The notes under the pieces: generated by a model
Seen by the model: the letters and a program-made list of their open reading frames with translations, nothing else
Told to the model about the DNA's origin: nothing
Databases searched by the model: none
Assembly: GCA_002104905.1 (NCBI GenBank)
Contig: MCFE01000038.1
Span: 124,001-188,000, forward strand
Direction: 5' to 3'
DNA length: 64,000 nt
DNA from: Basidiobolus meristosporus CBS 931.73
Lineage: Eukaryota; Fungi; Basidiobolomycota
Translations under genes and position numbers: made by a program
Shown here: piece after piece, positions 1 through 23,426 of the stretch
Layout: every line of letters starts with the position of its first letter
Position numbering within the stretch: position 1 is the first letter of the stretch

Positions 1-3000
1 ATTATTCTTAACCCCACGCTGGAGAATCACCACTTGCTCCTTGGCAACCTCGGTGACAACCTGTTGGAGTTCTTGAATCTGCGAGCTAATCCGATCAATC
101 TGTGATGCGAATTCCCTGGGAATGGCGGCGTACACTTCCTTGTTGACTAGTATCTTTTGCTGCTCGAACAGATTCTCCACTCTATCGTCTAGCTTGCGGA
201 GCTCTTCAATGATGCTACCTATGCCCTTGCCATTCTGTTGGGTGTTGCCAATGGATTTACGAAGAAGCTCTTGCTGGCGAACAATCAAAGCGCCAAGCTC
301 CCTTCGAAGGTTGTTCACACCCGCTCCTAACGATTGAATGTGCATATTCTGTGCCTTGATGGCATCCAGAACCCTTTCATCGTTGGCTATCTTATCTTGG
401 CGAACGAGAATTGCGTTTATGGCCTCCCCTAGACCGGTTATTTTGTCATTCAACGCATTTACCTCACCGTGAATGATCTTGTTCTCAGACGTTGACTGGT
501 TCTGGCCACGTTTTTGGTTCTGAATTATGACATTCTGTCGATTGCTAAGAACACGGACTTGTTCATTCATGTTGAACATGAGTTTGCTCAGGGTCTGTAT
601 TTCGTCGACGATCTGTTTGGGGATATGGCTTATTACTTGTGGCCTTGTCAAATCGCCCTGTCGTCTGACGATGTTATTCACCGCACTACTTAGATCGGTA
701 AACCTCTGGATTAAGAGTTCCATTCGCGAATTGTTGCCCGCCTGGTTAGGGCCATTTGCACGCAAGATCTCTGTCTGAACTGTCAGCAGTTTGGTCATCT
801 GAGCGCGGAGTTGTTCTAGTTGTTGGTTCATTTTTTCAATACTTTCCGCTTGCTGCTGTAGTACTTTGACGACATCATCCCGCCGCAAAAGCTCTGACTG
901 CTCAGAAAGAATCTGATTGACTGCGTTCTTGAGAGGACCGAATTCTTGGGCGATGTCGGAGACGTACTTGCTGATGGTGGTAAGGTGACGATCGTCTTTC
1001 CTCTCCAGTTGCAACAGGTTGCTTTGCCCCTGCGATAGCTTGGCAATTAGATTACCCAGAGCTGAAAAGCGGGAATTCAGATTTTCAACTACGGCTAATG
1101 CCTCCCGGGATATCTGTGAGCCAACCTCGGGATTGCCCAGCTGCTTTTGATACCCAATGATCTGGGCGACTATATCACGCAGTGCTCGAAGCTCGCCGTA
1201 TATCGGCCTAAGAACTTTGTTCGTTTCTTCTCCTGAGCCGCCATTAGAGGAATCCAGCTTCGTAAGAATAACCGACTGCTGCTCTACCAGACTGGCGAAG
1301 CGCGAGTTCAGGTCGTTCAGTTTTCGGTCCAAATTGTTGATTTGGCTTGACTGAACTTGCAGTATTTTGACGACTTGGTCGTTATTGAAAATTTTGGCTT
1401 GAGCTGCGAACGTGTCTCTCACAAAGCCCGTGAGGCCATTCAGCTGCTCCGAGAGGGTGTGTATCTCATTGATCAAGCGTTCTGGCACCTTTCTGCTAGA
1501 ATCTCTCGCAATGATTGCCATCTGGCTATTGGAGAACTGGTTCACTGACTGGATCAATTCTCCAAAGCGCGAGTCAAGCTTCCTTAACTCCTCAACAACC
1601 TCTTCAGGAACACGCCCATTCAGTTTAGCATTGAACAGTCTTCCTTGTTGCACAACTAGTTGGTTAATGAAGTTTTGAAGACCAGTAAGCTTCTCAATAA
1701 TGGCGCTATCACGGACCCTATCGCCACTATAACCAACACGTCTAAGCAGCATGGCCTGAATGCGTACGATCTCGTCCACCTTTCTGGCTAGACCCAGTAA
1801 CTCATTGTCAACCTTATCGGTCTTTCTGAGATTCTGCTTCAACAGCTCTGTATGAGTGAGGAGGATCTGTGTTTGTTCTGCATATAGGTTTTTCACATAA
1901 GACCCTAGCTGTCTGATGGAGTCCAGGATATAGCCCGCATTCTTGTTTACCTCCGCAGCGATCGCGCTTCCCTCTTTTTGACGTAAAGCACTTTGCTGTG
2001 CTAAAAGTCGATCCACAGTGTCGCTGAGTTTGGTGATTTTGGCGTTTATCACGGATATAGCAAATGGAACTTTTTGGTTGTATGAATCTTTCCATCTGGT
2101 CTGTAGAATTGCGGTCTGCTGGTTAACCAGTTTAAAGACGATATCACGTAATTCTGCCAACTCATTTGCGGTCTTGTCGAGGGAGGCGGTATTGTGGTTT
2201 TCCTGGCCCATCAAAGCCTGCTGCCCATTTACGAGTTGTTGAACCCGGTTCCCTAAAGTGGTAAGCTTATAGCTTACATTTTTGAAGGTTTGCATTTGCT
2301 GTTCACCAAGTGCACCAATGCGTTTAAGAATCTCGAGCTGCACGACCGAGGTACGGCTTATTCCCTGGTTGAGTTGAATCAGCTCAGCAGTAAGCTTTTC
2401 GAACCGAGAGCCGACTCCATCCGCAAATGCCTTTCCTCCACCAAGTCCAAGGAGGATTCTCTGTTGCTCCGAGAAGATTTGCCCAATAGCGTTGCTAAGC
2501 TTGCTTAGTTCCGCTCGTAATCTCTCCGCTTCTTTGGCTACATCCTCAGAAAAGTCGCCGTGAACATTTCGAGCCAGAGCGTTTTGCTGCTCTAGGATCA
2601 AACGAGCGTTTCTACTGATTTCTTGCAACACTGCAAAGAGACGACCATCGTTAACACCACTTCGTTTGGCGTCGGTGGATTCCTGCTCGTACAATGCTTC
2701 TTGTTGCTTGAGAACCTGATCGATTTTATTGTTCAGCTTCCCAACCTCAAACGAAAGGCTTTGAATTCCCCTGTTTTGTCCGTCGAAGAAACGCACTATT
2801 TCATTGCGGGTGATAAGTTGTGACTGAGATTGAGCCAACTTGCTGACGATATCGAATAGCTGCTCGAATTGCTCATTATAGTTGTGAGCGTCAGTGTTCG
2901 GAGAGGGCTGTCCTTTGTATTGAAGAAGTTGATCTTGCTTCAATAGAAGCACTCGAATGAACTGACCAAGCTGATTCAGGCCTGCTTCTATGTTAGCGAT

Positions 3001-6000
3001 CTCTTGTTTCAACTCGGTTGATAGGCCAGCATTGGATTTGGCAAGAATCAATCTCCTCTGTTCGTCAATCAATTGAGAGACCGCTTTTTCTAATTCAAAC
3101 AGTCGGGCGTTTGTATTGGAGTCACCATTGTGTACCTCATAGTTGACTAGCTTCTGTTGCTGACTAATCAATTTGGTGACATCGGATCCGAGGGCATTCA
3201 GTTTTTGGTTCACAAGTCTAAAATTGTTGTCTTGAGATCTCCAGAGCATGTTTACTGCCTTGAGCAGCCCAGCTTGATATTTGGTTAGGTCGTTCACTGC
3301 CATATTGAGCCTTCCAATTTTGGCATTGATCTGTAGTGCGATTTTCTGTGTATCTTCACTTCGAGAATTGACATTTCGCAACAAAGCGCTTTCCTCCTCA
3401 ACCACGTGCTGAATGGCTTGGTTCAGGAGGAGCAGTCTCCGTGTCATATTCTCAATGTCACCAAGACGTTTGCCTGAGATATTTGACGCCACATAGGCAA
3501 AGAGTTGGTCTTGCCCATCAGTTAGCCTTTGGACTGCCCTGTACAGGCCAGTCAGTGCCCTTATTTGATCGCCGTAATTATGATCTGCGTTACCCCGACC
3601 GGGGTGGCTTTTTTCCCACTCTATCAATCCGTTTATAGAGTTCTGGATTTGGGCTGTCTGCGCACCAAGTCTTTTGATATCTTTGGATTGTGACTCAATC
3701 AAAGAGAAGTACTTCGGTATGTTCAAGAGCACGTTCTGTTGCCTATTGAGGAGCGCCGCAATATCGTTCAGTTGTCCAAATCTCGCCATTATCAAGTCAA
3801 GTCTCTTGTTTGTATCTTGAGCATTAGCAGCGTTCTCTTTGCTAAGATGGCTCAAAATTTCATTCTGTTGGTTGACTAGTCGATCAATAACAAAACTCAG
3901 TTTCGCCACACGTTCGTTCATGTTTGCAACACTTCTCTCCAACCCAGAATCTTGATTCCCGTTGATTTTCAATGATAATAGCTTCTCCTGATCTTGAACC
4001 AATTGATAAACAACAGTGCTGAGCCGCTCCAGCTGTTTATCAGTTTGGAGGTTGCCACGATTATTGCGAACGTATTCGTTGCTGAGAAGATTTCTCTGCT
4101 GCTGGATAAGGGTGCCCATGGCGGTCCTTAGGTTTGCAAGCTGTTGCCCAATCTTGTTTATGTCACCTGAGTAATCCTTCAGCCTTAGAGAGAAATCACC
4201 ACCCAAAATTCGACTTTGTTGCCTTGTAATAAGTGCAAGTACATCATTTAGTCTGTTCAGTTTGCCATGGATCAATTGAACGCTTTGTGCCTCCCCCTGA
4301 TCATTTTTCAGCACTTGTTCTTGCTCGGCACTGATCCTTTCTACTACGTTGTAAATGCGGCTAGACTGCTCTGCCAGCATTTCAATCACTCTTTCGAGGC
4401 CTGCAGGTATTTTCCCGCCAGATCCACGAATTAGCACCCTTTGCTCCTTGATGATTTCCGTAACCGAATAACGTAGCTGGTTGAGCATGGCCTCGAGGTT
4501 ACGGTATTCCTCCGAATCATGGTTAGGGCCGTTTCCGAGAGAGCCGAATCTCTCAGAGATGGCCCGTTGCTGGGTGATCAGGTGATCCATCCTCTGACCT
4601 AAAGAGTTCAACTTGGAATCTAGCACAGCGATTCTGTTATCGTGGCGTGATGGGCTTTCAGGGATTGCTTTTCCACGCAGGAGCTCCTTCTGTTGGTACG
4701 CCAGCAAATTGATTACCTCACCAAGACGTTCTATCTGCATGGATAGTTTCTGGACTTCTTGAGAATTGTACTCCGCGTTAGGCTGGCCTGATTGGGAGCC
4801 AATTTTGCTTGCCAAGATTCGCTGCTCTTGAAGCAGGCGAGTGACAACTGAGCCCAGGTCTGCCAGTTTGTAGTTCACACTTTGGATGTCTCTTCTCACA
4901 CGATCCGAGTTTTTGCCGTTTTCGTATCTACCAAGCAAAACCTGCTGGTCCTGAATAAGTTGATTGACTGTTCTTCGAAGCTGCTCCAGCTTGAGGGTAA
5001 TGTTGTTTCCAAGATTTTTGTCAGCAGCCATATCCACTTTCTGCAACTTGGATTGCTCGTCGAGAAGTTGAATCAGTCTGGTGCCTATCTCCGTAACGTG
5101 ATGGTCCATCTTGGTGATAACGTCTGTTTGCTGCTTAATCCAGTTTTTCTGCGTGGCAAGCATATTTACTACATTCCACAGCCTCTCGAAGTAGCCATTT
5201 AATCTCTTCCAGTGGTCATCCGATAATCCTTCATTCGAGTCTGACAGCTTTATCAACCTTCCCTGTTCGTTTACAAGTCCTCTGATGATCATGCTCAGAT
5301 TGACGATATTTTGGTTTAGATTCCCAATATCGCGGACCAGCTCCTGAGGATAGTTGCCAGCTCTGGGTGGAAGGTAGTAATTGCTTTCCTTGCTAACAAG
5401 CTGCATGATGACCTGCTGTAATTGGCTCAACCGTCTTGCAATATCACCGTACTCCTTACTATCTCGTCCATCAGTGAACCGCTCAAGTAGCTCAGTTTGC
5501 TGGGCAGCCAGCGTTTTCATTCCCTGCTTAACCCCTTCAAGATTTTGGACGACCTTCTCGGAGTCGATGCTGCCTCCGGAGCTTGACCAACCGGTGTTGT
5601 TGATTAGGTTCATTTCCCTCTTGACCAACATATCTAAGGAGTTGCTTGTCTTCCCTAATCTCTGTATCAGCTCTTCAACTGTTCTGATAGATCCGGCATA
5701 GTCAGCGTCTTTATAATCGACTTGTCGGAGCTGTTGAAGCGCAAGCTTTAGGCTTGTAAACAAGCCATCCACTCGTTTGTTAAGGTCTTTCATTTGAGTA
5801 TACTCCCGACTTATGAGTTGCACAGTTTCGGCATGATTCTGCTTTTCCTCCATGGTGCTCTTGTTCAGCCGTTGCTCGATGAAATCCTTGAATTGATCGA
5901 ATTCTTTACGCAGCTGGTAGACCCCTTCATTGTCCTGCAGGGAAGATTTGTCCAAGCGAGAGAGGAAGGAGGATACCTCATTGGAGATTGACGTGATTGA

Positions 6001-7179
6001 CCCCTCCATTCTGCTCAAATTCCCGCGGATCTCTCTCAACTCCTGGCTAGAATTCGAACTGTATGATGGCCTAGTAATATCTTGATTGCTGGAGGAGTAG
6101 CTAGGTAAATTACCAACGGCTCTCAAAAGATCCGTAATTCTTTCATTGATCTCGTTCATGTCTTTGGCGGAACGGACAATGATGCGATTTTGCTGCTGCT
6201 CTATACGGGATTCCTTCGCAGAGACCTGGTTCAAACCCTTTTTGATCTCCGATAATTTTGCGTTGATTGAATCCATCTCGAATAGAGTTTTGGAGGAAGC
6301 CCCTAGCACTCTACTGGTTTGAGATTGGATTTTAGTGTTTTGTTCGGAAACTATCCCGACTGCTCGCGCTAGCTCGGTGATTTTCCTGTTTAATTCATCC
6401 ATCCCTTCTACTACTCCGTCGACATGAGTATTTTGGACGGTGTGGTGCTCTCCTACCCCGCCTTTGGTGGATCTGAGTACTGCTTCAGACAACGCCAAGG
6501 TAAGTTGGTCTAACTTCGCATCTAGTATTTGAAATTCCTTTGATTTCTCTAACTGGGCAGACACGTTGATGTGCGGTCTCTCGACGGCACCCTTCCGAGT
6601 AGTTTGGACATTCGTTGGCAGATCAACTGCCGCTTGTTCGATATACGTATCTCCTCCATCCAAGACAGAGTCAACATATCTCAACTGGCCATCCGGGAAA
6701 AGGGCGACCTGACTACCGGGAGCCACGCTAACAGCACTGGCGAAGTAATTTGATAAAGGATAGTCGCCTATTTCCACAAACGAGGGAAATCCAATTTCCG
6801 ACTCCGCTAATTCGATCCCAAGCTCCTCAATATCATCCCAGGAATCGGCAATGAATTCCAATGGTTGCTCATACACTATGGTGCCAACCAGCTCCTGCTT
6901 CAGACCCAATGGACCGGGATATCCCACGAAGGAGCGATTTCTGAGGGCTGAAGCATGGCTCTTGGTTATCAAAGGGCCTCCAGTCTTCTGGTGAGAAGGC
7001 TTGCTCTTGGGTTGGATTGCCTTGTTTTCGAGGGGGTGATCTTGATCAAGTTCCTTTGATGCACCTGAATCGCCATTTACAGCATGGGCTACGGCCAGCT
7101 GTGAGATTAGGAAAAGATTACGACGAAAATTGGATTTACGAGGAGCATCACTATTGCTGGCTGAGGTTTCGAATAACAT
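1..7179 (-). CDS. Giant helical-repeat protein A (3'-partial; at least 2393 aa, continues beyond position 1); paralog of the plus-strand giant protein
   Basis: I read plus-strand frame 1 from 1 to 7179 and found no TTA/CTA/TCA triplet, so the minus frame is open throughout. First ATG at 7179, upstream in-frame stop at 7203-7201. Begins MLFETSASNSDAPRKSNFRRNLFLISQLAVAHAVNG, contains VALFPDGQLR, then recurring LxxxVxxLVxxQxxLL units. It has no stop inside the window, which is the likely reason it is absent from the ORF track. The 5' exon structure is uncertain: an intron-like GTAAAT..CTAAT..CAG lies at 7139-7099. Confidence 0.92.
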   Translation of the reverse strand, partial: MLFETSASNSDAPRKSNFRRNLFLISQLAVAHAVNGDSGASKELDQDHPLENKAIQPKSKPSHQKTGGPLITKSHASALRNRSFVGYPGPLGLKQELVGTIVYEQPLEFIADSWDDIEELGIELAESEIGFPSFVEIGDYPLSNYFASAVSVAPGSQVALFPDGQLRYVDSVLDGGDTYIEQAAVDLPTNVQTTRKGAVERPHINVSAQLEKSKEFQILDAKLDQLTLALSEAVLRSTKGGVGEHHTVQNTHVDGVVEGMDELNRKITELARAVGIVSEQNTKIQSQTSRVLGASSKTLFEMDSINAKLSEIKKGLNQVSAKESRIEQQQNRIIVRSAKDMNEINERITDLLRAVGNLPSYSSSNQDITRPSYSSNSSQELREIRGNLSRMEGSITSISNEVSSFLSRLDKSSLQDNEGVYQLRKEFDQFKDFIEQRLNKSTMEEKQNHAETVQLISREYTQMKDLNKRVDGLFTSLKLALQQLRQVDYKDADYAGSIRTVEELIQRLGKTSNSLDMLVKREMNLINNTGWSSSGGSIDSEKVVQNLEGVKQGMKTLAAQQTELLERFTDGRDSKEYGDIARRLSQLQQVIMQLVSKESNYYLPPRAGNYPQELVRDIGNLNQNIVNLSMIIRGLVNEQGRLIKLSDSNEGLSDDHWKRLNGYFERLWNVVNMLATQKNWIKQQTDVITKMDHHVTEIGTRLIQLLDEQSKLQKVDMAADKNLGNNITLKLEQLRRTVNQLIQDQQVLLGRYENGKNSDRVRRDIQSVNYKLADLGSVVTRLLQEQRILASKIGSQSGQPNAEYNSQEVQKLSMQIERLGEVINLLAYQQKELLRGKAIPESPSRHDNRIAVLDSKLNSLGQRMDHLITQQRAISERFGSLGNGPNHDSEEYRNLEAMLNQLRYSVTEIIKEQRVLIRGSGGKIPAGLERVIEMLAEQSSRIYNVVERISAEQEQVLKNDQGEAQSVQLIHGKLNRLNDVLALITRQQSRILGGDFSLRLKDYSGDINKIGQQLANLRTAMGTLIQQQRNLLSNEYVRNNRGNLQTDKQLERLSTVVYQLVQDQEKLLSLKINGNQDSGLERSVANMNERVAKLSFVIDRLVNQQNEILSHLSKENAANAQDTNKRLDLIMARFGQLNDIAALLNRQQNVLLNIPKYFSLIESQSKDIKRLGAQTAQIQNSINGLIEWEKSHPGRGNADHNYGDQIRALTGLYRAVQRLTDGQDQLFAYVASNISGKRLGDIENMTRRLLLLNQAIQHVVEEESALLRNVNSRSEDTQKIALQINAKIGRLNMAVNDLTKYQAGLLKAVNMLWRSQDNNFRLVNQKLNALGSDVTKLISQQQKLVNYEVHNGDSNTNARLFELEKAVSQLIDEQRRLILAKSNAGLSTELKQEIANIEAGLNQLGQFIRVLLLKQDQLLQYKGQPSPNTDAHNYNEQFEQLFDIVSKLAQSQSQLITRNEIVRFFDGQNRGIQSLSFEVGKLNNKIDQVLKQQEALYEQESTDAKRSGVNDGRLFAVLQEISRNARLILEQQNALARNVHGDFSEDVAKEAERLRAELSKLSNAIGQIFSEQQRILLGLGGGKAFADGVGSRFEKLTAELIQLNQGISRTSVVQLEILKRIGALGEQQMQTFKNVSYKLTTLGNRVQQLVNGQQALMGQENHNTASLDKTANELAELRDIVFKLVNQQTAILQTRWKDSYNQKVPFAISVINAKITKLSDTVDRLLAQQSALRQKEGSAIAAEVNKNAGYILDSIRQLGSYVKNLYAEQTQILLTHTELLKQNLRKTDKVDNELLGLARKVDEIVRIQAMLLRRVGYSGDRVRDSAIIEKLTGLQNFINQLVVQQGRLFNAKLNGRVPEEVVEELRKLDSRFGELIQSVNQFSNSQMAIIARDSSRKVPERLINEIHTLSEQLNGLTGFVRDTFAAQAKIFNNDQVVKILQVQSSQINNLDRKLNDLNSRFASLVEQQSVILTKLDSSNGGSGEETNKVLRPIYGELRALRDIVAQIIGYQKQLGNPEVGSQISREALAVVENLNSRFSALGNLIAKLSQGQSNLLQLERKDDRHLTTISKYVSDIAQEFGPLKNAVNQILSEQSELLRRDDVVKVLQQQAESIEKMNQQLEQLRAQMTKLLTVQTEILRANGPNQAGNNSRMELLIQRFTDLSSAVNNIVRRQGDLTRPQVISHIPKQIVDEIQTLSKLMFNMNEQVRVLSNRQNVIIQNQKRGQNQSTSENKIIHGEVNALNDKITGLGEAINAILVRQDKIANDERVLDAIKAQNMHIQSLGAGVNNLRRELGALIVRQQELLRKSIGNTQQNGKGIGSIIEELRKLDDRVENLFEQQKILVNKEVYAAIPREFASQIDRISSQIQELQQVVTEVAKEQVVILQRGVKNN

Positions 7180-7314
7180 TACTTTGTCACTATCCTTAGC
7201 TCAATAGGAAATTCTAGGAACAGCTGTCGAGTATATTATGCCTGGTTTGGTCGATTAGTTTCTCCAAATGGATGACGAAGAGAAGCGATATTGTATATCG
7301 ATGAGTCAGATATA

Positions 7315-8256
7315 TCAAGTAAAAAGCAGATCCCAAAAATGTGGTGTGTTAGCGGAGAGGAAACCAAGCCTTTCGAGGAACAAAATTTTACGAATTGAAT
7401 GTATGTCAAAATTGATGGCGCCCTTGGAAATGTCGTCTGCAGGGACTTTTATACTGTTAGTGATTTCCGGCAGAATTGCAGCGAATCCATGAAACGGGGT
7501 TACACAATTCACTATGAATGAAACTGTTGAATCGACATTTCTTTGCAGTGTTTTAAGAAGATGCCAATTTTCTCCTATTTGTTCGTGCCGTTTGGCTAGC
7601 GTATCGCTGATTGATACCCCGTTGATCGCACCATCATATGGGCTGGAGGTCGTAACGGAGGGGCTTCGTGCATTTCTCAATTTGAGACTATTAAACAAGC
7701 CCCGGGCAACCCATTGATCGAGTACTTGGGTGCATTTCATATCCGCAGACGCGTCATTACAAGGAAAGAACTTTATCTAACCTTCGATATATGAATGTTT
7801 GATGTTGAGCCCAGAGCTGGGATCACCAATGATATGAGGGATCAAGCGGTTCCCCATCGATTGAACGTGGTCCTGTGGAAGGGTGCTCCCGATCGAGGCT
7901 TAAAAAACACATCCAGGTTTAAAAGCTACATGTTGCCAATGGTACCCCATCTGCGATAGTGAGCGCTGTGATTGCTGCATACCCATGCGTTTCTTTAAAC
8001 ATTATGATGGGTTTGAAGAAGTTACGAAACAGCCAGAACGCCCCACTATGTGAGCTAGCACATCCGGCTTGTCTCTTCGGAGCAGCCGCCGTTCTTGCCG
8101 GAGCATGAGGTGATCGGTCTGGATTTCATCCTGAGTGCTCATGAAACTTGGTGGCAGACTAGGCGTTTCCTCACAGAAGCCCCTCACCGGTCCACTGGTA
8201 TGTTTTCCGGTATGTGGTGAAGGCACTTCTTCGTTCGATCGTGCACCAGATATCAT
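7315..8256 (-). pseudogene. Decayed coding-like sequence between the two giant genes
   Basis: Track ORFs 8002-8256 and 7315-7740 lie in the same minus frame, separated by three in-frame stops. No family recognised. Confidence 0.25.
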
Positions 8257-8698
8257 GGATCTAGCATACTATGTGAGATTCATGCCATCTTGTGATTCGG
8301 CCAGAGGACTCAACACCAGCCAGCCTCATCAGGGAAAGGCGATCCATATGGAATCAACAATTTGTCAATACTCTCCCCAATTGGTTGACCCAAATCTATG
8401 GTAAAAGGCCTGGTGATGTTGTATTAACAACAAGCATGTTACATGTCGGTGGATTGTTTCCGGAAGAAAATCATGACCGCGTATCTCAAAACCAGAAAAA
8501 GACCGATGCTAATGCAATGAAGACTGTGCATAACCCACCGAACCTTATAAATATGAAGAGATTCAAAGCGGTGGATACTCCACTTTCCTTACGCAAACGA
8601 ACACAGTGCAAAGTCTCACGTTTGAGTATTTGACATCACAGTTTTGCATTCAATCATCAATTTCATAGACTGTTATAGTATCGAACATTCATCGCACC

Positions 8699-11600
8699 AT
8701 GTTGGCCAATTCCAATAGAACTTATGCTGGGAAGAATCGGCTCATGGCGTTATATCTGTTCAGCCAGCTTGTATGGAGCAGTGCAAGCAACGGAGAGGAT
8801 TTGAGCCCAGTCGTTGATAGCGACACTAGGGAATCTCTTGCTAATCAGAGAAAGCCCATGATTTCTCACGCCACTAGCAATGCCCTTGACAGACATCCAC
8901 AGCATTCCAGATCTTCAGGGCCAGCAAAAAGCTTGGATATTCATACACTAGTGAATGAGCACCCTGCTGAACGCAAATCACCAGGGGCCTCGGGTGAGCA
9001 GATCGTACTCTTTCCTGACAACAAGTTGAGGCTTCTGGGAGGCGCTCAAAACTTGAACGACAAGGAGTTTGGTTTAAACGAGTTAGCCCGTGCTGGTTAT
9101 GGGCCGAAGAAAGATGGTAAGTGGTCGATTGAATAGTGGAGATGAGAACACTCCTAATCCAATGATTTCGATTTAGCTAAGAAGCGATCTGGAACATATG
9201 CTCCAATTCAAAAGAATGTAAAGCAGTCACCGAAAAGCCAGTCACACAAAGAAGAAAGGCTGAATGATAGAATTGACAAGGGAGTCCTTGAACTAGAGCC
9301 GAAGGTACCAGGGCTCTCTCCTCGACAACACTCCCGCGCCAACCATTCGGGGATACCTGGGGAACTCCCCCAAGTAATTCAGGAAGAAGCGGCTGATACC
9401 AAAAAAACTCTAGACCGAATGGGGACCCTTAGAAGCCTTCTCGGAGAATTATCCGCTATTGAGAAAAACACTCGTATCATGAATCAGGAGACACGCCAGT
9501 ATGTTAAGAATACTGCGACAAGGGTGCAGCAAGCCTTTGGCGCTATTGAGAAAGCGCTCAGCCAACAGTCCGAACTTCGTCGACGCCGTCAGGGTGACCC
9601 ATTCGTGGTAGGAACTAATGAAGTTCACGAGATGGATCATAAGATTCAAATGCTTATCGAGGCGATGTCGATTGTATTAAATGAAGTTAAATCCTCATTT
9701 TCTCTTCTTGGCGACTCGACAATGCTTGCTACCTCAACCACTAAGCATATTGACTCGAAGATTGATGATTTATTCACTGTGGTCGGTGCTTTTACCCAAA
9801 AGCAAAGTACCCTGCTTGGGCGTATCACTCAACTCTCGCAATCACAAGAACTGAGCTTTAGAAAAGTCAACCAGCGATTGAACTCTCTTGGGGACGGCAT
9901 CAACCAGCTTATGGCCCGTCAAGGACAACTTTGGAGCAAGTATGGACATGATACTGTGAATAGTTTTGGGTTTACCCAAACCAAACTACAGGAATTGGGG
10001 AAATCAGTCGAAGGGATAGTGAATGAGCAACGGAAGCTTGTGTATTTCTTATCCAAAGGGAATGCTATCAGGTCAACAGGAGTACTGAAAGAGCTTTCGA
10101 AGCTCGACGGGGGAATGAATCAACTGTCGAAATTTGTTCAACGTGTGCTTGAGCATCAAAACAAGTTGTTGTCGTACACATTGAAGGGCAACGACTCGAT
10201 CAAGAAACAAGACAAAAGTCTGCGCATCTTTGGAGAGCAATTAGACAACCTATATAGAATGGTAGATCAGGTGGCAGTAACCCAAAAGCATTTAATCACC
10301 CGCGAAGAAATTATCGATCTGTTCAAGAAGCAAAATGGAGATATTAAAGGCCTGTCCTTAGAACTTGCTGAAATTGGCAATCGAGTCGTTCTACTACTTA
10401 ACCGACAGAAGGATGCGCTGAGGAGTGGCCAAACAAAAAGTAAGGAGTTGAATGAACTAGGCCAGATGCTTTCGCAGGTGGACGGGGGTGTACGCAAGTT
10501 ACTGGTGCAACAGAATATACTGCTGCAAAATGGGCCGAAACTACACAAGGACGTTACGCAAGTCGGAGCATTGCGCGGGCAACTTATGAACCTTAGAAAG
10601 GTTGTCTCCCAAATATCTGAAAGACAGGATCACCTCCTTCAACAACAGCAAGCAGGCACAAAGTATATTCTGGATGATGTTGGCCAGGTGAAAAATAATC
10701 TTTCCAAGCTGAGCCAAGCTGTGGAGAAAATCACACAGCTTCAACTGAACCTCATACAACGTGGTGGTTTAACTCCAGAACAAGCACATGACCTTCAATA
10801 CATCAAGTCCGAGTTGGGAAATCTGGATGGAAAGGTTGCGGTTCTGGTAGAGCAGCAACACGTGCTAGTCAATAAGCTTTCTGCAGGTCCATCAGGTAAC
10901 AAAGGAATCGTCCGAATTGTTCGCACTCTCGATGAACTACGTAAAGCAATATCCCAACTGACGAAGCAGCAAACCTATGTTCTATCCCAAAAACCCGATA
11001 TAGCCGCTAGTCAAAACATTCTAAATGGAGTTTCCCAACTTAACAAGAAACTCTTAAGCCTAGGCAAGGATGTGGATCAATTGTTCGCTTTGCAGAAGAC
11101 TTTGCTTACTCAATCAGCTAAAGACTCGAGTACCATAGTTAAGATAACCGAGAAATTGGATTCGAAAGTTGGACAGCTTGATGCTTATGTAAAGGAGTTG
11201 TTGTTGGAACAGAAGGCCGTTCTACTGGATACTTCGAAGTTGATCAAACAGAATTTGATCCAGAATGATAAGCTCAGTGCAGAAGTGAAGGCTGTGGACA
11301 AAAAGTTGGAAAATCTGGTGCGAATTCAGTTTAACCTACTGAAGCGTATCAATGGCGAGCGTAACCCCAAAGAGACCGTTGCCATTCTTCAGAAGCTAAG
11401 CGAACTCACAAGCCTAACAAACCAGTTGATGGAACAGCAAAAGAAGTTGGCCTACGCTTCTTCTACTGGAAAAGTCTCACAGACGACCCTTCAGCAGTTA
11501 GGCACACTAAACGAGAAATACAACCAGCTAGCAAAAATTATAGACCAAATTTCCTCCAAGCAAAACACTCTGGTTGATGTTTCTAACGATAGCAATGCTA

Positions 11601-14600
11601 CGGGGCACAAACTCGAAGAACAAATTAACGAAGTCAATCATCGTCTGCTAGGCCTTTCAGATTTCATCAAGAAAACATTTAATGAGCAAACGCAAATACT
11701 ACACACACGTGAAATCGCCTCTTTACTTGGGGATCAAAATCAACGTTTAGCTGGTCTTGGTGTTAAACTTGGTGAACTGGGCAACCAATTTGATAAGATG
11801 ATCAACGGGCAAGAGGTCATTGTAAAGAAACTTGGGCAAGTAGCAATAGATGACACGAAGCGGGACCGAGCTATTGCTGTTGAGCTGGGAACCTTACGAG
11901 AAGTTTTAAGAAAGCTAGTTGATTCCCAGAAGCATCTGTTGGGTCCGGAAGTGGTTCATAAAGTTGGGGAGGGCGTGATTAAATCGATCGAAGGCCTAAA
12001 TGATCGCATGATACAGCTTGGCAAGATGATTGGAAGCATTAGGGAGGAACAGAGTGTAATAGTTAGAACACTTGGAGAAGGCACGAGCTACAAGCAGATG
12101 GAAAATCGATTTGACCAATTGCACAAACAATTTTCTCAAATGGCCAAGTGGATAAGGCAAATTGCGAGTGAGCAAGGCAAGCTGTTGCAACGAGACGAAT
12201 TACTCGACATCCTCAAAGTTCAGACGAACGGTATTCATACGATCCAGTCAAACCTTACCAAGTTTAGAAATGATGTCGGCCGTATTGTGGATTTACAGAA
12301 AACTTTGCTTCATGACACTCAGGCTGCCAGCCAAAACGATGCGGCTAGAGATGCCGAGTTGCTTGACAAAATGAACGAGCTCAGGAAATTGACTGAAGGA
12401 TTGATCAACGCTCAACAAGTGATCCTACACTCTGATTTGTATAAGACTATTTCCAAGGACGTGCTCTCACAGGTACATCAGATTAACGCACGTCTGGAGA
12501 AACTAGAGCCTACTACCTTTGACCTACTCAAGCAACAGAAGCAGCTACTGGAACTGAACTCAGTAGAAAAACACAAATCAAGCCAGATCTTGACTGGTGT
12601 TAAAGGAGTATCTACAGGAGTCACACTGCTACTGAACGAGATCAAACAGATTCATGGAGAACAAAAGAGAATAATCAGCCAGAACACAGAAATCAAGTCG
12701 GTATTGGAGAAGCAATTAGGCTATATCAACAGAATCAATGGTCAACTAGCGAAATTCTCCACGCAAACTCTCAACTTCTTGTCCCAACAAGCCAAATTCC
12801 TTGAAAGACTAATCGCCTCCCAGGAGAATGATAAGAGTGGCATCAAGGAAACCTTGGAACGGGTGAAGCAACTCCAAAATGCAGTTACGAGTGTGGTACA
12901 CTGGCAGCATTCTCTCAATATCCCTGAGATCCTAGGCTCCTTACCCAAGACGCTGAGTAATCACATCCGTGATATTTCTGCCAAGATTATTCGCCTAACT
13001 GACAACGTTGCCAGTCTTAGTCAACAACAAAGCATCATTGCCAAAAAGGAGGATGGAGAGTTCGGATCAATTCGCCAAGGCTTAAACGAATTGAATGGAC
13101 GCATGGACAAATTTGGGGATGCCATTGGCAAAATATCAAGCGCACAGAATAAGTTGATACACGACGACGAGATATTGAAATTGCTCAACAATCAGACGCT
13201 TCAAATTCACGGCCTTGGGGTTAACCTAAACTCCATTCGCGCGGAAATCTCCAAATTGATAAGCGATCAGCAACAATTTTTCGTCCAAGGATCAAAGTTC
13301 TTCCAAGGCGATAAGGCTAATCTAGATAGGATGAACGCAACTATAGCGTATGTTCGCAAAGTAATGGATCAGCTCTTCAAGCAGCAACAATTATTTTCCA
13401 ACAGCCAGCTTCTCAACCAGTTCCCTAAACACATAGTCCACGATGTGGAAACCTTGAATGGTGAGATGCATAAATTACAAGAATTTGTGAAGGAACTACG
13501 AAAATTACAAACAGCCACCTTAGAAAACCAAATTAAGAGCACTAAGACCACACAAGTACTGGTGCAAGATGTGGAAGTGTTATCAGGAAGGTTCAACGGA
13601 TTAAGTGACTACGTGAAAAAGATCCTAGAGCTTCAGCAAACAATACTAAGAAACGAAAAAATCGGGCCGATTTTAGAAAAATTCTACGGAAATTTCCAAC
13701 AAATTGAAGGTCGCCTTGCTCAATTAGACAAACTTGTCCGTCATATCTTGGAAAATCAACAGTCACTGATTAATACCGATCAATTCAAGACATTTGCACG
13801 CAGAAATAGCTTGGATGATAAGAAAATGGTTGAAACGCTCAGCAATCTCCACAACACTATCCGAGTCTTGATTGAGCAACAGAAAGACCTTATCAAGCCA
13901 GAGATGTTAAACTCTGTGACTGGGAATCTTCATCATTCCATTCAATCAGTTGGGGAAGAAATCGCCGGATTAAGCGAGAAGATTAATCAAATTCAAGCTG
14001 AGCAAAGTCAGGTCATAAAAGAACAGCACAATCTAAACCTCAACTTCAATGAAGCCGTCAAGGGATTGAACAAGCAGCTGATTGACCTGAACCAACGTGC
14101 TTCTCGACTGTTTGTGCAGCAAAAAGATATATTACAAAATGAGCAAGTTCTAACGGTCATGGCAGAGAAATTAAATGACTTGGCACCGATCAAGAGCAAC
14201 CTCGCTATGGTGAATGAGAAGCTTAACTCTTTACTGAGCCAGCAGAAGGATATTGCTTTGATAGCCCAAAGATCCGGTGGTGAAGGGCCCAAAGATAACA
14301 AGCAAATCCTGGATCGCTTCACTTCATTTAGTCAAATGGTGCGGCATATGATTACCAAGCAAACTACCCTATTGTCAGAGCAAATCATCGAAAAGGCGCC
14401 CAAGAGGTTACTCGGGCAAATCGTAGCATTAAACAGGCAATTCGATCTTCTCAACCTTGGACTTGGGAAGCTATTTGAGGTTCAAAAAAAGATATTAAAC
14501 CCCGGTTACAGTGATGTTTCGAGCAATCGAATCTTGAGCGGATTGGATCTTCTTTCGCAGCATTACTCGACAATATCAAAAACCGCCAAAAATATCGAAA

Positions 14601-16942
14601 AGACACAGAACAATCTGATGAGTCGTGAAGAATTACTAGCCATTCTCCAAAAACAATCTGGTGCCATTCAAAATGTTCACACGAAGGTTGGGCAACTTGA
14701 CGAGAAAGTTGGGGTCTTAATAGGCCAACAACGAGCTCTTTTGGAGTCTATTTCCCAGAAATTTAAGCCGACAAGTGATTCTCATGAGACGTTTGGTGCG
14801 GTCCTGACCCATCTAGAAGGGTTAGAGAAGGGGATTAAATACATCTCCCAAGAACAGCGTAAACTCTCTCAGCTGAATACAGACCAAAGAAACAAAATGG
14901 ACGATAAAATCCTAAACTCAACCCATTCCTTGGATCAAAGAGTGGCACGATTGGCACAGGTTGTTGGTCGCCTATTTGAGAATCAAAGAGCCCTTATTAT
15001 TGCCGAAAAAGACACCAAAACGCCCAAGGGAATATTTGCCGCGGTAGAGAAGTTAAATGCCAATTTGGTACATTTGGATGGTGCAGTTCAATTTCTGGTC
15101 AAGGATGTTCAAAAAGTAGATGCCAGAATTTCTGCCTTATTGCAGCTACCACAAGATATGGAGAATGTTAAAAGCAGGCTAGCACACCTTACTGGTGCAA
15201 CCAAGAGACTAGTTGATCAGCATACTCAGCTGTTTGGCTTCACCAAAGAAGGTATTGACACACTGACGAAGCAGCAAAGGGTTATGGCAAGCAATGTGAA
15301 CAGTAGACTATCGGAAATTACGAAGCTTGTTGATCAGCTTATTCAACAACAAAAACAGATTATGTCGGCAGAACCAAAGAACTCTCCCAAGCATTCGAAG
15401 GCGGTCGCCACTTTGATATCCAAGATATTTAAAATAGAACAAGTGATCGAGTTTCTACTGAACGAGCAGAGAAAGATGTACCAGGCGGATCGCAACGAAC
15501 AAAAGGAGCAATTCAATAATCTAGATCGAAAACTGAATTTATTTGGAGAAGCGTTGAAACAGTTTGTTAATCAACAGCATTCTGTAATGAAAATACTTGG
15601 TGTAGTGGAACGACAAACTGCTGTTGTCAACGATATGAGCAATAAGCTCGGAAATCTCAATAGCATTGTCAGCACACTTGTATCACAACAACAGCAACTC
15701 CTTGTCTATACGAAAGAACATGCTCAGACAGAGAATCCACAGATCGATGGACGCTTAACAGAGCTGAGAGAGACTGTTTCGAAAATTCTTCAACAGCACA
15801 AGATTCTACTTGAACGCGGGTTACAAGAGCTGAGCTCAGGAAGAGATAGGAAACATCGTGAGATCACCGCTCAATTCGACAATCGTTTAAGCCAAGTGGC
15901 TTCTTTGGTTCAGCAACTTGTCCATGAACAAGAAACCGTCTTATCGCAGACCAAGCACCAAAACCAAGATAACCCAAGGATTGTATCGGCCGTCTCTCGT
16001 ATCTCAGGACATATTAATGAGCTTGCTAAGCTGATGACAAGCTTAAATAATGAACAATCCACATTAATTGAGCGTGGCTTTACACACCTTTCCCAGCAGA
16101 ATAATCAGGAATTTAGGCACGTGGATGAAAGGTTGGACCAGATTGGCTCCGCCCTTAAACGACTTGCTGGAGATGAGACTAGCTCGCTTATCAATCGATT
16201 CGAAAATGCCTCACGACAGCAATCACAAGAGAACAAAGCAATGAAATCCCAACTCTACCAAATTACTAGGGTTCTAGAAAGAATCGTCTCCAAGACAGAT
16301 CTGATTTCCCCGGATAATACAGGAGATATTACGGATGTAAGACGCCGTCTAGACTATCTCAATCAAGTTCTGACCAGACTCACGGAAATTCACAACGACC
16401 GAAAACACCTGGCATTAACCGAAGATCAATACCAGAAGGTGAGCTACTTGATGAATATGATCCCTGCCTTAAATGAATCTATCAAACGATTTGACTTGTC
16501 TGGATCCATCCATTCGCCGGAAAGCTTGAAACAACTATCAATAATCAGGGAATCTATTGAGGAGTGTAATAGAGCTATCATTGGTCTTCAAAAGGTTTTG
16601 AATTTGAGTGGTCCTGCAGTAGCATCATTTGTATCGCCTGAAATCAGTACACCCGATGCTGCCGTAAGAGCAGCCAATTCTAGAAGCGATGATCCACAAC
16701 CACCAGTACTAATAAGTCGAGTCGAACTCGCGAACCCTGGACTGGCACCTTACAGGATATTGTCTAACAATGACGACTCTAACGGAGATAAGAGCACCAC
16801 AAATAATGTCTCTGACGGAGAAGTTGTTGAGGAAGACCCTGCCAAGAGTCTTTATGACAATCACTATTTCAACAATGGATACTGGTACCCTAGAAATGAA
16901 GTCTTCAACGAGGTAATTGGCGGTGGTGAACGTTTACTCTAA
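8699..16942 (+). CDS. Giant helical-repeat protein B (about 2727 aa; exons 8699-9116 and 9177-16942)
   Basis: Track ORFs 8699-9136 and 9419-16942 share a frame. A GTAAGT donor at 9117, CTAAT branch and TTTAG acceptor at 9176 define a 60-nt intron whose removal deletes the stops and opens the frame through to 9419. Start context CACC-ATG; AATAAA at 17008. Contains IVLFPDNKLR, as in paralog A. Confidence 0.92.
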
Positions 16943-17374: not shown

Positions 17375-18538
17375 TTAACGAGAACATTGAACATCGTACT
17401 TGACCGGGTACGTTATCATCTCCTGGGCTGGATAGGGTGGGGGATTGTTGTTATTAGTCACCACTGCGTACTCGTAGCATGGCGGATAGTACGAGGGCAA
17501 GTCTTGGAAAAACTCGTCATGTGCAGCTGGGAGGATGCATATGGGCAAGTCGAAAATGAGAAAGTCTGTGATGCTAGTTCTCTCAATCTCAACTTTAACC
17601 TGAAGAGTATGGCGAATGCGAATCAGCTCCGAATGATAGTCTATGTGTACAGACTTCGAATTTGTGGGAATCTGAACATTAATTGTGGTGTCCAGTCTGG
17701 TAGTAGGGGTGAACTTCTCGGAGCAAAGGCGCAGCCAATTGTGGTCCACATTAAATTTGTTGATTTCCGGGATTCGGTTTGTAACGGACTCCTTAAGGAA
17801 ACATACCACCCTTTTGATATGGGCTTGCTCCATCAGCGAAGTTACCTTGATGTTCAGAGGAATCGATTCACCAAAGCCAAAGCACTTCATAGGAACATGT
17901 ACGTCATAGCGGACTTTGTCCTCCCACACATCAGATAAATCAGTGGATTCGTTGATTTCATTACTAGTAGTATATCTCTTGACGACAACCTCCTTCTCAC
18001 AAGTGAGGTTTCTTTGAAGAAAACTCCTCTCCGCAAATGCTTGAAGACAGTACTCGACTTTGCCGCTGTCGATATGAATTGTCTCAGGTAGAGATCCAGG
18101 GAAGGCATATTCAAATATGTAAGCGTATTCACCGGCCGGGAAGAGATGGCCCTCCTTCTTTGGCTCAAGTAGAACCCACTCATGGTCGATCAGCTTTCTT
18201 TTGGCATAGTTGGCAAAAGCCTTGGTCCCATATGCTAAGAACAATCGCGGTTATTATCTATGCATAGTAAGATCCATTTACAAAAACTTACATTCTGTCC
18301 ATGTGGTTTTCGCTCTTCCCTTAAGACACAGTGTCAGGGATCGTAATTTGGTAGGCTCCTTCAAACGCAGTACGACTTTGCCTCTTAGCAAGGCACCAGC
18401 AGATTCGGAAGGAGAACCATTGAAAATCAGTGTATCAGACTCTAATTGAATATCTAGTATGGTAGTTGCATGCATCGTGGGAGAGTGGAGTGTGTTTTCG
18501 CTGTGCGGAAGCAATCTGTATTTATATCCGCTCGACAT
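17375..18538 (-). CDS. Alpha-arrestin (ART/Rod1-like ubiquitin-ligase adaptor), 2 exons
   Basis: Arrestin-N motifs GALLRGKVVLRLKEP, LPAGEY-type FPAGEYAYIFEYAFPGSLPET and KVEYCLQA. C-terminal PY-type motifs LPSY, PPCY and PPPY. Intron 18291-18235 (GTAAGT..TTAG). The start may be the second Met at 18475. Confidence 0.88.
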
Positions 18539-20168: not shown

Positions 20169-21581
20169 GGAGCTATTACTCTGAATGAGTTACCAAGCCT
20201 CACCCTGCCCCATCTATAGATCGATATTAATCTAAGCAACCTGTATTTTGTTAATGGTTGATGTAATTAGTCATAGATTTGGCTCACCTTCAGAATATCC
20301 AAGTTATCATTTGTTGGACTTGAAGCCACACACCCTGATAGTGGTATGCTACCTCTGCATCACCATGACAGAAGGAAAATGGAAGGCAAACCAAAATAGC
20401 TGGCAATGACCCTCACTTGGGAGATTGATGGTCAGCTCATCATTTTTGTATCTTCTACAAATGTATTTCCCCTTAACCAATATCAGAGAATAGACTGCCA
20501 ACATTTGAATAGCCCCATTGGCACCTGTGGATACCAATTGTGTATCTGTATTGTAAAATGCATCCTGGGCAATGCACTAAGTCAGTTGGATATTGACACT
20601 AACATCTTTAGAAATTGTGTATACAGACCAAACTCTGAATTTTAAGGCACATCATCACAAGTTATCAGCTACTTGCGTGATTGCTATACAATAACCATCT
20701 TGTAAAGTATATTGATTTCAAGCCAATTTTTACTAGCAAACGTCCTTTTTATCCATAGTATGTCTTTATAATATGTATCTAAGCATGAAATCAAAGTAGA
20801 TGTATTTCTTGAAATAATCCTCAGGCTTGGCTCGTAGACAGTATTTGACATATCTTGGTGCTAAGTATGTGATTAGTACCAGTATTATATTTCATATAAG
20901 CTAATACGATCAAATATCCAACTGTGTGCTCAGAAAATTCTCTACTTATCACCAGTTGCCCAGTTAGTACTTGGTACTCGCCAGATAAGAACATATTAAT
21001 TTACTCATCCAAGGAGTTGCTTTTATTGGTTTTTAGTCATATACCAGTAACAGATTGTCAGACATAGATTTTTTTTCCAAGATTTTCATTGGTGCATCAT
21101 CGGGCTTCTTCGAGCATCATGGTAGATAGAGGTACGTTTTTGGGGCTTGAATGATTGGACAGGATTTGGTCAGGAAACATGCGTACCACTTCAGCAAGGC
21201 AAAATTAAGGGATCCATTCAAAAGGCGCGAATGTTGGGATATTCAAGCATGAAACAACATCACCAATGATCCAATGATAAGAAACGAAAATCTATTGAAC
21301 CACCATAGTATCGGTACATAGGCACAAAGTGTATGAATAAATGCGTTGCATAGGTAGCGTGTTTCATCCCAGAAACATCGTGAGATTTTTGGACTCCACA
21401 ACTTTTCTAATCAACAATCATATAATTTTCTATTCATAGCATGTTTCTTAACTAACTTAAGGTATGAGGCACTGGTGTATTAAAAGGATTTGTGTATCAT
21501 TGCTTTCATAGCTTTTATCATTATAATCATAATTTCCTTGCTCTCTTCCCTCTCTCGAGATATTCCTCTATTACTGTCAAA

Positions 21582-23426
21582 ATGGGTATACTTGAATCTG
21601 TCTTCCACCCTTCCGAGTTGGTCTCTATTGTGAGGTTCTTTTCTCATGCAACCCGTAAGCCACAGCAATTCCCTCGGCCTACGTTGTTTACCTGCTACGA
21701 TTTCTTGGACCAAACCTCCAGATCGTTTGCCAGCGTTATTAAGGAGCTGGATGACGAGCTTCGTGACGCTGTAAGTATTAGTTTCAAACCTGGCTGAGTG
21801 CCTCTTGTTAATCTTGTATTATGTTTCTTATAGGTTTGCATCTTCTATTTGGTACTTCGTGGTCTTGATACTGTTGGTATGCAGCCTTTTTAAACACCAG
21901 TAGCTATTTAACGAATGCTAACCCTGTGCTTATAGAGGATGATATGTCCATTCCCAACGAGAAGAAGCTTCCATTATTGAGAGCTTTTCATGATATGATC
22001 TACGTGCGTGGTTGGAATTTCACCGAAAGTACGGATATTTTGCAATTTAGCATCCGGGCATTTTAGTAACATTCTGCATCACTTATAGATGGAGAGGACG
22101 AGAAAGACCGCCTGTTGTTGGTCCAGTTTGACACAGTTATCGAAGAATTCTTGTTACTAAAAGAAGAGTAAGTCAGCCATATATTACAGTGACCTAGATA
22201 TACGGCATGCTAATGATATTTGTGTTTCTGAAGGTACCAGCTTGTCATTGCAGATATCACCCGGAGAATGGGTGCTGGCATGGCTGATTTCTGTGACAAG
22301 CGTGTCTCAACAAAGGACGACTATAACCTTTATTGTCATTATGTTGCTGGGTTGGTAGGCGTAGGCTTAAGCAAGCTATTCGCTGCTTCCGGTCTCGAAG
22401 GTAAGTTTGATCCCTGAAGTGGCAAACTTATTAGAAGCTGATGTGAATTGCAATCATTTAGATGAAAGCTTTGCCAACATGGACGAATTGTAAGTAAATG
22501 TGTGTAGTTGCTATGGAGTTCCGAGCTAACCGTATTCCACATTGTTAGGTCGAACTCAATGGGTCTATTCCTTCAGAAAACCAACATCATCCGTGATTTC
22601 TACGAGGATTTGCTAGACGGAAGAACTTTCTGGCCACGCGATATCTATGGTCATTACGTCAAGGACCTTGGCGACCTCATTAAGCCCGAGAACAAAGAGA
22701 AGGTAGAGTTGCATTTTGTGGAATATGACAAATACAACAATGCTAATCTAATCCTCATAGGCATTGGCTTGCCTGAACCATATGTGCTTGGATGCCCTTT
22801 CTCATGTTAATGATTCTTTGGATTACATGTCCCGGATTCGTAATCAAACCATCTTCAATTTCTGTGCTATCCCTCAGGTAGGTTGATTATCACTGTATTT
22901 TTTAGCTTAGACATAGCTGATTAATTGTGATTTTAGGTGATGGCTGTTGCTACGATTGCTGAAGTCTTCAATAACTACAACGTCTTCAGCACGAATGTCA
23001 AGATCAGAAAGGGCTTGGCTATCAGAGTAAGCTTGGCGCATATTCAAATGATAGGTGTCTCCAATATACTAAACATTACATATTCACAGTTAATATACGA
23101 AGCCACCAGTGTTGAAAGCATTCGCAGTATTTTCCTTGAATTTATGTACAAGTTTGTTCTAAAGAACAACCCTAACGACCCCAACTATATCAAGATCAGC
23201 CAAACTTATGGAAAGGTAGTGCCCAAGAGTAATAGCTTCATAACAATCTTTTGTAGACTAATGGTTGACTTATAACCAGGTGTTGCAATACTGTGAAACC
23301 AACCCCAAGTTGAAGGCAGCTGCCAAGAAGACCGACTCTTCCGGGCTTTATCTTCAATATGCACTAGTTATCATTCTTCTTGCCATCATTTATCAATACC
23401 GTCAAACTCAAGAGGAGAGTTCCTAA
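21582..23426 (+). CDS. ERG9: Squalene synthase (farnesyl-diphosphate farnesyltransferase), 11 exons
   Basis: The spliced product contains [59 protein letters not shown] and VKIRKG, plus a C-terminal membrane anchor. Ten GT-AG introns traced; stop TAA at 23424-23426. Confidence 0.97.

Follow-up and report, generated by a model that had tools for sequence, protein, structure and literature searches.

What kind of protein do two giant genes that stand head to head in the fungus Basidiobolus meristosporus encode, and what could these proteins be for? The two genes, named A and B here, lie at the left end of the window, which is the whole 64,000-nucleotide stretch analysed from contig MCFE01000038.1 of strain CBS 931.73 (positions 124,001 to 188,000, forward strand). 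Computational analysis showed that A and B belong to a real and well-defined, unannotated family, modelled as giant tandem helical-bundle rods, which is confined to one fungal genus. The overall reading of the pair, in which A and B leave the cell and form rods like beads on a string, possibly from both proteins together, that act as a structural element, tether or adhesive, stands evenly balanced between acceptance and doubt, and confidence in any specific role is low.

Organization of genes A and B

The two genes and the region between them are arranged as follows.

1..7179, minus strand: gene A, 5' two-thirds (2393 of about 3583 codons), an open frame that matches the public protein P0005 at 99% identity and 100% coverage.
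7180..8698, no strand assigned: divergent intergenic region of 1,519 bp between A and B, with the presumed promoters of both genes.
8699..9116, plus strand: gene B exon 1, with a signal-peptide-like leader, a disordered stretch and the LFPDNKLR motif.
9117..9176, plus strand: gene B intron of 60 nucleotides (nt), with a GTAAGT donor, a CTAAT branch-like site, a TAG acceptor and 3 in-frame stops.
9177..16942, plus strand: gene B exon 2, 7,766 bp with the stop codon.

On the minus strand, no stop interrupts the frame of gene A between 7200 and 1, and the first ATG is at 7179. The public protein P0005 is a hypothetical protein of 3566 amino acids (aa) with a gene span of 10,752 bp, which means that gene A reaches 3.57 kb past the left window edge. 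An earlier note on this DNA had estimated this extension at about 3.8 kb. The joined exons of gene B encode exactly 2727 aa and match K493DRAFT_334011 (P0001) exactly; the intron between them is predicted to be of the canonical spliceosomal type. The start codons of the two genes are 1,519 bp apart. Thus, the divergent arrangement at a distance of about 1.5 kb and the product sizes first proposed (at least 2393 and about 2727 aa) were confirmed. The same holds for an exon of more than 7 kb in each gene, given the length of exon 2 in B and the span of A, whose sole modelled intron is probably false.

Paralogy and repeat architecture

Residues 1252-2388 of A align colinearly with residues 159-1297 of B, with 27% identity over 1172 aa (E 2e-96). 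The colinearity that had been claimed from a few example pairs is therefore real, and these pairs lie inside the alignment. The two proteins begin and end with conserved elements and are filled in between by repeats.

6679..6702, minus strand: invariant LFPDGQLR motif of A, residues 160-167.
9008-9031, plus strand: LFPDNKLR motif of B.
1..6555, minus strand: window part of the tandem array of about 160-aa super-repeats in A, about 21 in the whole protein, found with an iterated hidden Markov model (HMM).
9347..16489, plus strand: tandem array of about 16 super-repeats of about 160 aa in B, each with four heptad helices carrying a core Gln and modelled as a four-helix bundle.
16877..16891, plus strand: conserved C-terminal aromatic motif GYWYP of B, part of (H/Y)xGY(D/E)(Y/F)xxG(Y/F)WYPxNxxF.

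In an alignment of seven N-termini of the family, the invariant positions are M1, L-x-S-Q-L in the hydrophobic leader, one Pro and Q..LFPD..LR. The common signature of LxSQL followed by LFPD..LR, which had been noticed in A and B, is thus invariant in 7/7 members. The LFPD..LR motif lies within about 150 poorly conserved residues between the leader and the repeat array. The aromatic motif ends both A-type and B-type proteins. The tails of the A-type proteins are basic (net +23, +15 and +6), the exception being a divergent A-like copy at a second B. meristosporus locus, L002 (net -7), and the B-type tails are acidic (net -5 to -11, with the extension after the motif counted).

Autocorrelation with a BLOSUM matrix peaks at lags of 7, 14 and about 41. 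A repeat HMM was seeded with one 162-aa segment and iterated to convergence, and it found 106 matches in five proteins, each with an E value of 1e-12 to 1e-37. There are 16-22 matches per protein at a spacing of 150-168 aa, and they tile residues 197-2577 of B (about 16 copies) and residues 192-3370 of A (about 21 copies). The super-repeat consensus consists of four units of about 40 aa with the pattern h..h...h..h...h..hh...Q..hh (h, hydrophobic), which equals 3.5 heptads with Gln at a core position. This core Gln is present in 313 of the 368 units; together with two Leu, it provides the sole invariant or near-invariant residues across the repeats. The spacing from Gln to Gln has its mode at 41, with 39, 42 and 40 also found and a range of 35-45. 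Multiples of 7 make up only about 14% of the spacings. The heptad phase is thus interrupted at nearly all unit boundaries, and the loop lengths vary. Pro and Gly are more frequent in the segments between units, reaching 0.40 in the loop that joins unit 2 to unit 3. A continuous two-stranded coiled-coil rod of the myosin tail or tropomyosin type was rejected, since its heptad phase would have to be unbroken. As a refinement of the helical-repeat description, A and B are best modelled as arrays of about 160-aa four-helix modules and not as continuous coiled coils.

Inside one protein the repeats share only about 20% identity, against about 26-29% for repeats at the same position in A and B. This result indicates that the array is old, that it predates the split of A and B, and that it has been kept repeat by repeat. 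All family features (the LxSQL leader, LFPD..LR, the 160-aa super-repeats with core Gln, and GYWYP) occur in full-length A-type and B-type proteins of two species, and the anatomy of the proteins as described here is close to certain.

Distribution of the family

A, B, P0003 and P0005 were scanned against Pfam and NCBIfam without any match above threshold. The earlier note had seen no ATPase, kinase, motor or transmembrane domain in A and B, and none was found. The NCBIfam model TIGR02168 (SMC) reached 21.8 and 34.1 bits against a cut-off of 567, and over coiled-coil stretches only; identity with SMC or Rad50 was rejected on this score and on the lack of an ATPase head domain. The spectrin repeat PF00435 had no match even at E 1, the FIVAR or GA modules of Embp and Ebh had no Pfam matches, and for talin, vinculin and alpha-catenin there was no Pfam match, no FERM head and no I/LWEQ domain. 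Feature searches of the ESM Atlas returned generic coiled-coil look-alikes alone, with scores of 0.83 or lower.

An exhaustive HMMER search with a profile of the C-terminal 1,170 columns covered 1.84 billion representative proteins. In this search and in two word-index searches, relatives were found solely in B. meristosporus and B. ranarum. The B-type members are P0001, P0002, P0003 and P0004, together with a fragment, P0009, and the A-type members are P0005, P0006, P0007 and P0008. Four further HMMER matches (E 2e-5 to 5e-4) were rejected as unrelated; two of them are proteins from metagenome-assembled genomes (MAGs) and two are unnamed sequences. A search with a profile of the LFPD region at the N-terminus did not retrieve any smaller proteins that carry this signature. 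The view of A and B as lineage-specific helical-repeat paralogs lacking an enzymatic or motor domain therefore stands, with relatives in Basidiobolus only. A full-length match to a characterised family with a known fold, which would have contradicted it, was sought in Pfam, NCBIfam, and sequence and fold searches of the PDB, and none was found. Horizontal transfer was rejected because there is no foreign homolog and B contains a predicted spliceosomal intron.

N-terminal leader and predicted export

The leaders of A and B, and the in-frame introns of the public gene models, are located as follows.

7072..7119, minus strand: hydrophobic signal-peptide-like segment of A, NLFLISQLAVAHAVNG, residues 21-36, preceded by basic RKSNFRR.
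8741-8794, plus strand: signal-peptide-like leader of B, LMALYLFSQLVWSSASNG.
7089..7139, minus strand: 51-nt in-frame 'intron' of the public A model, which deletes the conserved hydrophobic segment and is probably false.
L005 gene bases 9490-9543, L001 gene bases 8467-8526 and L002 gene bases 8806-8877: in-frame mini-introns in the P0006, P0002 and P0003 models, respectively.

The layout of the leader is the same in 7/7 N-termini. It starts with 12-25 residues with basic side chains, which are followed by a hydrophobic core of 10-13 residues (LFLISQLAV type), a small-residue site (AHA, VQA, SSA or ALS) and then an acidic or polar stretch. In A, a small-residue site of the AHA/VQA/SSA type was seen by eye after the hydrophobic core. 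Signal-peptide criteria were a basic n-region, a hydrophobic h-region of 7-15 residues and small residues at -3/-1; all are visible by eye in 7/7 members, with Ser-Gln inside the h-region. The leader fits a putative cleavable signal peptide. The family proteins contain no second hydrophobic segment, C-terminal anchor or retention motif. Export of the A and B proteins is thus predicted, and it is rather better favoured than the full reading of which it forms a part.

The 51-nt 'intron' of the public A model encodes exactly the conserved hydrophobic segment. The public models of P0006, P0002 and P0003 likewise contain one in-frame 'intron' each of about 50-70 nt, and the translations of these match residues conserved in the paralogs. 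Since the mini-introns are in frame and their translations are conserved, the leader of A is read as coding, and the mini-introns in the P0005, P0006, P0002 and P0003 models are probably prediction artefacts. Four public gene models are corrected in this way, and one unannotated gene of about 2,800 codons, described below, is revealed.

The strongest alternative is a cytoplasmic scaffold, which is possible but clearly less probable than export. According to this explanation, the leader is not a signal peptide and the proteins stay inside the cell, where they tether the cytoskeleton or organelles in the manner of talin, spectrin, nesprin or golgin. Removal of the hydrophobic segment in the public A model would agree with it, but the 'intron' responsible is in frame, like the three demonstrably coding mini-introns in the sister models. 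Giants composed of tandem helical bundles or coiled coils are mostly cytoplasmic, Cys is nearly absent from the family and sequons are not enriched; against this stands the leader itself, whose basic, hydrophobic and small-residue parts are kept in 7/7 members, including paralogs only 27% identical. The top Foldseek matches (talin R11R12, Sla2 THATCH and the vinculin head, all non-significant) point to cytoplasmic proteins of this type, whereas Pfam scans found no actin-, membrane- or microtubule-binding domain. An exported rod is the best reading because a signal-peptide-like N-terminus is present in all members.

Predicted fold of the super-repeat

The fold was modelled with AlphaFold2 (AF2) from an alignment of 24 rows of non-overlapping di-repeats (alignment A4), with residues 993-1318 of B as the target. 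This di-repeat model has a predicted local distance difference test score (pLDDT) of 79 and a predicted template modelling score (pTM) of 0.48. Its eight helices measure about 31-36 residues each and are separated by loops of 3-5 residues, and each super-repeat begins with a short connecting helix. In VIA-align, model residues 1-163 and 162-326 superposed separately on compact helical bundles with Z scores of 9-12. The matches were designed helical repeats, Chlamydia IncA (153 residues, root-mean-square deviation (rmsd) 3.5), SPECT, Rx-CC, the MLKL four-helix bundle and Borrelia surface proteins. Each 160-aa half of the predicted model aligned to solved four-helix bundles over 100-153 residues with an rmsd of 2.4-3.5. 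At the level of the model, these Z scores reflect a common arrangement and not kinship. No match was significant when Foldseek was run against the PDB, AFDB clusters and the Atlas; talin R11R12 came first (E 0.03, TM 0.20). The best PDB sequence-profile matches of the repeat are de novo single-chain antiparallel coiled coils (sc-apCC-6, E 9e-8); a PDB profile search with the C-terminal 1,170 aa gave nothing real. Each super-repeat is best read, from the model, as an antiparallel four-helix bundle, and the whole protein as a string of bundles.

Pairing of the helices between chains is unlikely. In such a segmented intermolecular coiled coil, the partners of the helices would lie on another chain or on two others (A-A, B-B or A-B), and the product would be a regularly hinged rod of several hundred nm. 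Layers of core Gln or Asn are a known device that sets register and oligomer state in coiled coils, and the core Gln of the repeats could be such a layer; its spacing varies between 35 and 45, however, and the heptad phase breaks at almost all of the 40-aa boundaries. The strong 7- and 14-residue autocorrelation and the weak SMC or Rad50 coiled-coil matches agree with paired helices, but the enrichment of Pro and Gly at the boundaries, highest between units 2 and 3, does not, and the profile resembles designed antiparallel single-chain bundles. Although helices of up to 80 residues occurred in a first AF2 model, the better-supported model shows compact bundles. The string of four-helix bundles is therefore retained for A and B.

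Conservation and evolution of the gene pair

The head-to-head A/B pair and the same downstream neighbours are found at three loci: the window, L002 of B. meristosporus and L001 of B. ranarum. In B. ranarum, the A-type gene K7432_000011 and the B-type gene K7432_000010 are divergent neighbours, followed by arrestin, SQS_PSY, LYR and HLH genes. At L002, the B-type gene for P0003 has the same downstream genes, and an unannotated A-like open reading frame (ORF) lies on the opposite strand.

L002:562-9006 (contig MCFE01000168.1), minus strand: A-like ORF of 2,814 codons, unannotated, 41% identical to A and head to head with K493DRAFT_351315.

This ORF likewise begins with a signal-like leader, MNTFKRLRCNFYLLSQLAVVQSIQG, and carries a YWY motif at the C-terminus. 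The downstream genes of L001 and L002 are also shared with the window, where the arrestin-domain and squalene/phytoene synthase genes (17375-18475 and 21543-22400) keep their synteny with the other two loci and are about 65-87% identical at the protein level. The A and B orthologs are about 50-56% identical, far below these arrestin and squalene/phytoene synthase (SQS/PSY) neighbours, which indicates that the giant genes evolve fast. The divergent arrangement at three loci in two species fits a functional coupling of A and B, as far as gene order can tell.

In a maximum-likelihood tree, the A and B clades are separate (support 100/100). Within each clade, the window copy groups with a fragment copy of B. 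ranarum. The L002 and L001 copies are grouped in the A clade, and in the B clade they form successive branches with no supported pair. The tree thus contains two pair lineages that are older than the species split, so that duplication of the whole pair came before the divergence of B. meristosporus and B. ranarum. At each B. meristosporus locus, one gene of the pair has kept the canonical length, and the other is shortened and lies on a long branch. In the window the shortened gene is B (branch length 0.71), which is without about 900 aa (about 5-6 super-repeats) after the LFPD region compared with its relatives; at L002 it is the A-like gene (branch length 1.12), which is about 750 aa shorter.

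These two shortened copies and the missing annotation of the L002 A-like gene are what could suggest decaying duplicates, a repeat-driven artefact or recent bacterial or viral imports, but such an explanation is very improbable, because the ORFs of 7.2-11 kb are intact in two species at 50-60% protein identity with their heptad positions and Gln conserved, the repeats are old, about 20% identical and not simple sequence, B has a predicted canonical spliceosomal intron, and no prokaryotic or viral relative occurs among the 1.84 billion proteins, in which the other matches, at E 2e-5 or weaker, are unrelated MAG proteins.

Proposed role of A and B

The conserved divergent pairing and the complementary tails favour co-expressed, possibly heteromeric rods. 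In the proposed mechanism, A and B would be made together from their common 1.5-kb divergent control region, and both would enter the secretory pathway through the leader. The four amphipathic helices of each super-repeat, about 33 residues long, would then fold back on each other with one buried Gln each, to give 15-21 bundles per protein. Outside the cell or at its surface, the products would be long rods of many modules, in which A and B may be paired by their oppositely charged tails. Such rods could serve as a structural spacer, an extensible tether or an adhesive fibre, like the talin rod, spectrin or staphylococcal Embp and Ebh.

A more specific version of this mechanism is a long shot, somewhat weaker even than the pairing of helices between chains. 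It holds that A and B form an extracellular or wall-embedded fibre whose bundles unfold and refold under load, that is, a secreted talin-like spring for a mechanical task specific to Basidiobolus; conidium launch by elastic rupture and the adhesive capilliconidium tip would be examples.

Several points weigh against exported, heteromeric rods. The signal peptide was read by eye, and its core is short, interrupted by Ser-Gln and spliced out in the public A model. The proteins contain 0-2 Cys and 14-32 sequons each, an unremarkable number; these counts are neutral and do not favour an extracellular location. The intergenic DNA has no conserved block common to the three A/B loci. The B gene of the window may be partly degenerating, as judged from the loss of about 900 aa and its long branch. 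As for the bundles, the first AF2 model (651 aa, 7 sequences) was all-helical with a low-confidence pLDDT of 53, AF2 run on a monomer is biased to intramolecular packing, and the structural matches are too weak to tell helical bundles apart.

Comparison with known systems

The nearest analogues of A and B are the staphylococcal proteins Embp and Ebh and, in mechanical terms, the talin rod. According to two reports, Embp and Ebh are exported, of megadalton scale and composed of dozens of tandem alpha-helical-bundle repeats that form an elongated attachment rod (PMC7587433, PMC9302970). A and B, as modelled, share with them the plan of a giant tandem helical-bundle rod. Embp and Ebh differ in being bacterial, anchored to the cell wall and made of FIVAR/GA-type units with two bundles each, whereas the modules of A and B are 160-aa four-helix units with a core Gln per helix; no sequence relation between the two groups was found.

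The talin rod (R1-R13), vinculin and alpha-catenin are also strings of bundles, each with 4-5 helices and about 120-170 aa, and talin R11R12 is the top Foldseek match in the PDB. The bundles of these proteins are force-bearing units that are able to unfold. Talin is cytoplasmic and without a leader, and its bundles are heterogeneous; A and B are a regular 4 x 40 aa without FERM or I/LWEQ, and the talin match is the non-significant one given above. Spectrin-repeat proteins (spectrin, nesprin, plakin and the bacterial EzrA) resemble A and B as giant rods of tandem, antiparallel, heptad-based helical bundles. Their repeat has about 106 aa and three helices, the last of which runs into the next repeat, in contrast to 160 aa and four helices in A and B.

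A and B also resemble sc-apCC and designed helical repeat proteins, which gave the best profile match and the best structural matches (Z about 11-12). They consist, as A and B do, of an idealised LxxL heptad helix, a short loop and a further helix. As these proteins are artificial, the likeness comes from common design rules and not from descent. Nebulin has modules of 35 aa in super-repeats of seven modules, kept position by position, and this order suggests a length-setting or periodic binding role. A and B resemble it in the hierarchical order of unit within super-repeat along a giant protein. Nebulin differs in its module and super-repeat sizes; it is a cytoplasmic actin-binding protein whose chain does not fold back into a bundle, and no sequence similarity to it was detected.

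A and B are among the largest proteins of B. meristosporus, and their divergent pair has been kept through duplication and speciation with no annotation or detectable relative elsewhere. If they are exported four-helix-bundle rods, they would be a fungal counterpart of the bacterial giant helical-bundle adhesins, which to our knowledge has so far not been described. They would also be a natural version of the designed antiparallel helical repeat proteins, and the one buried glutamine per helix would make them a clean natural example of register control. Their importance would rise sharply if they proved to be exported and to act mechanically when spores are launched or adhere.

Minor observations on the intergenic region and window copy of B

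The public annotation of 7180-8698 shows no gene between the ATGs of A and B. The longest ORF of this region has 153 codons (7318-7776, minus strand); it has no Pfam match, corresponds to no annotated gene and is probably spurious. A scan for promoters and terminators of the bacterial type, which is not relevant to a fungus, remained at chance level. Comparison of codon usage with the neighbouring ORFs, a small reference set, gave correlations of relative synonymous codon usage (RSCU) of r 0.31-0.54.

In B, the junction of the missing repeats (9177-9400, residues about 140-215) adjoins the 60-nt intron, and about 70 non-helical, low-complexity residues that align to nothing come next. This junction may be a deletion scar. 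A 23.7-kb contig of the DNA run X3 matches B at 15676-15722 and 16067-16107 with about 90-95% identity and the same spacing. This run carries the same sample label as the source run, and none of the sampled words is present in it. The matches suggest that the X3 contig carries a diverged homolog of B from another genome or haplotype.

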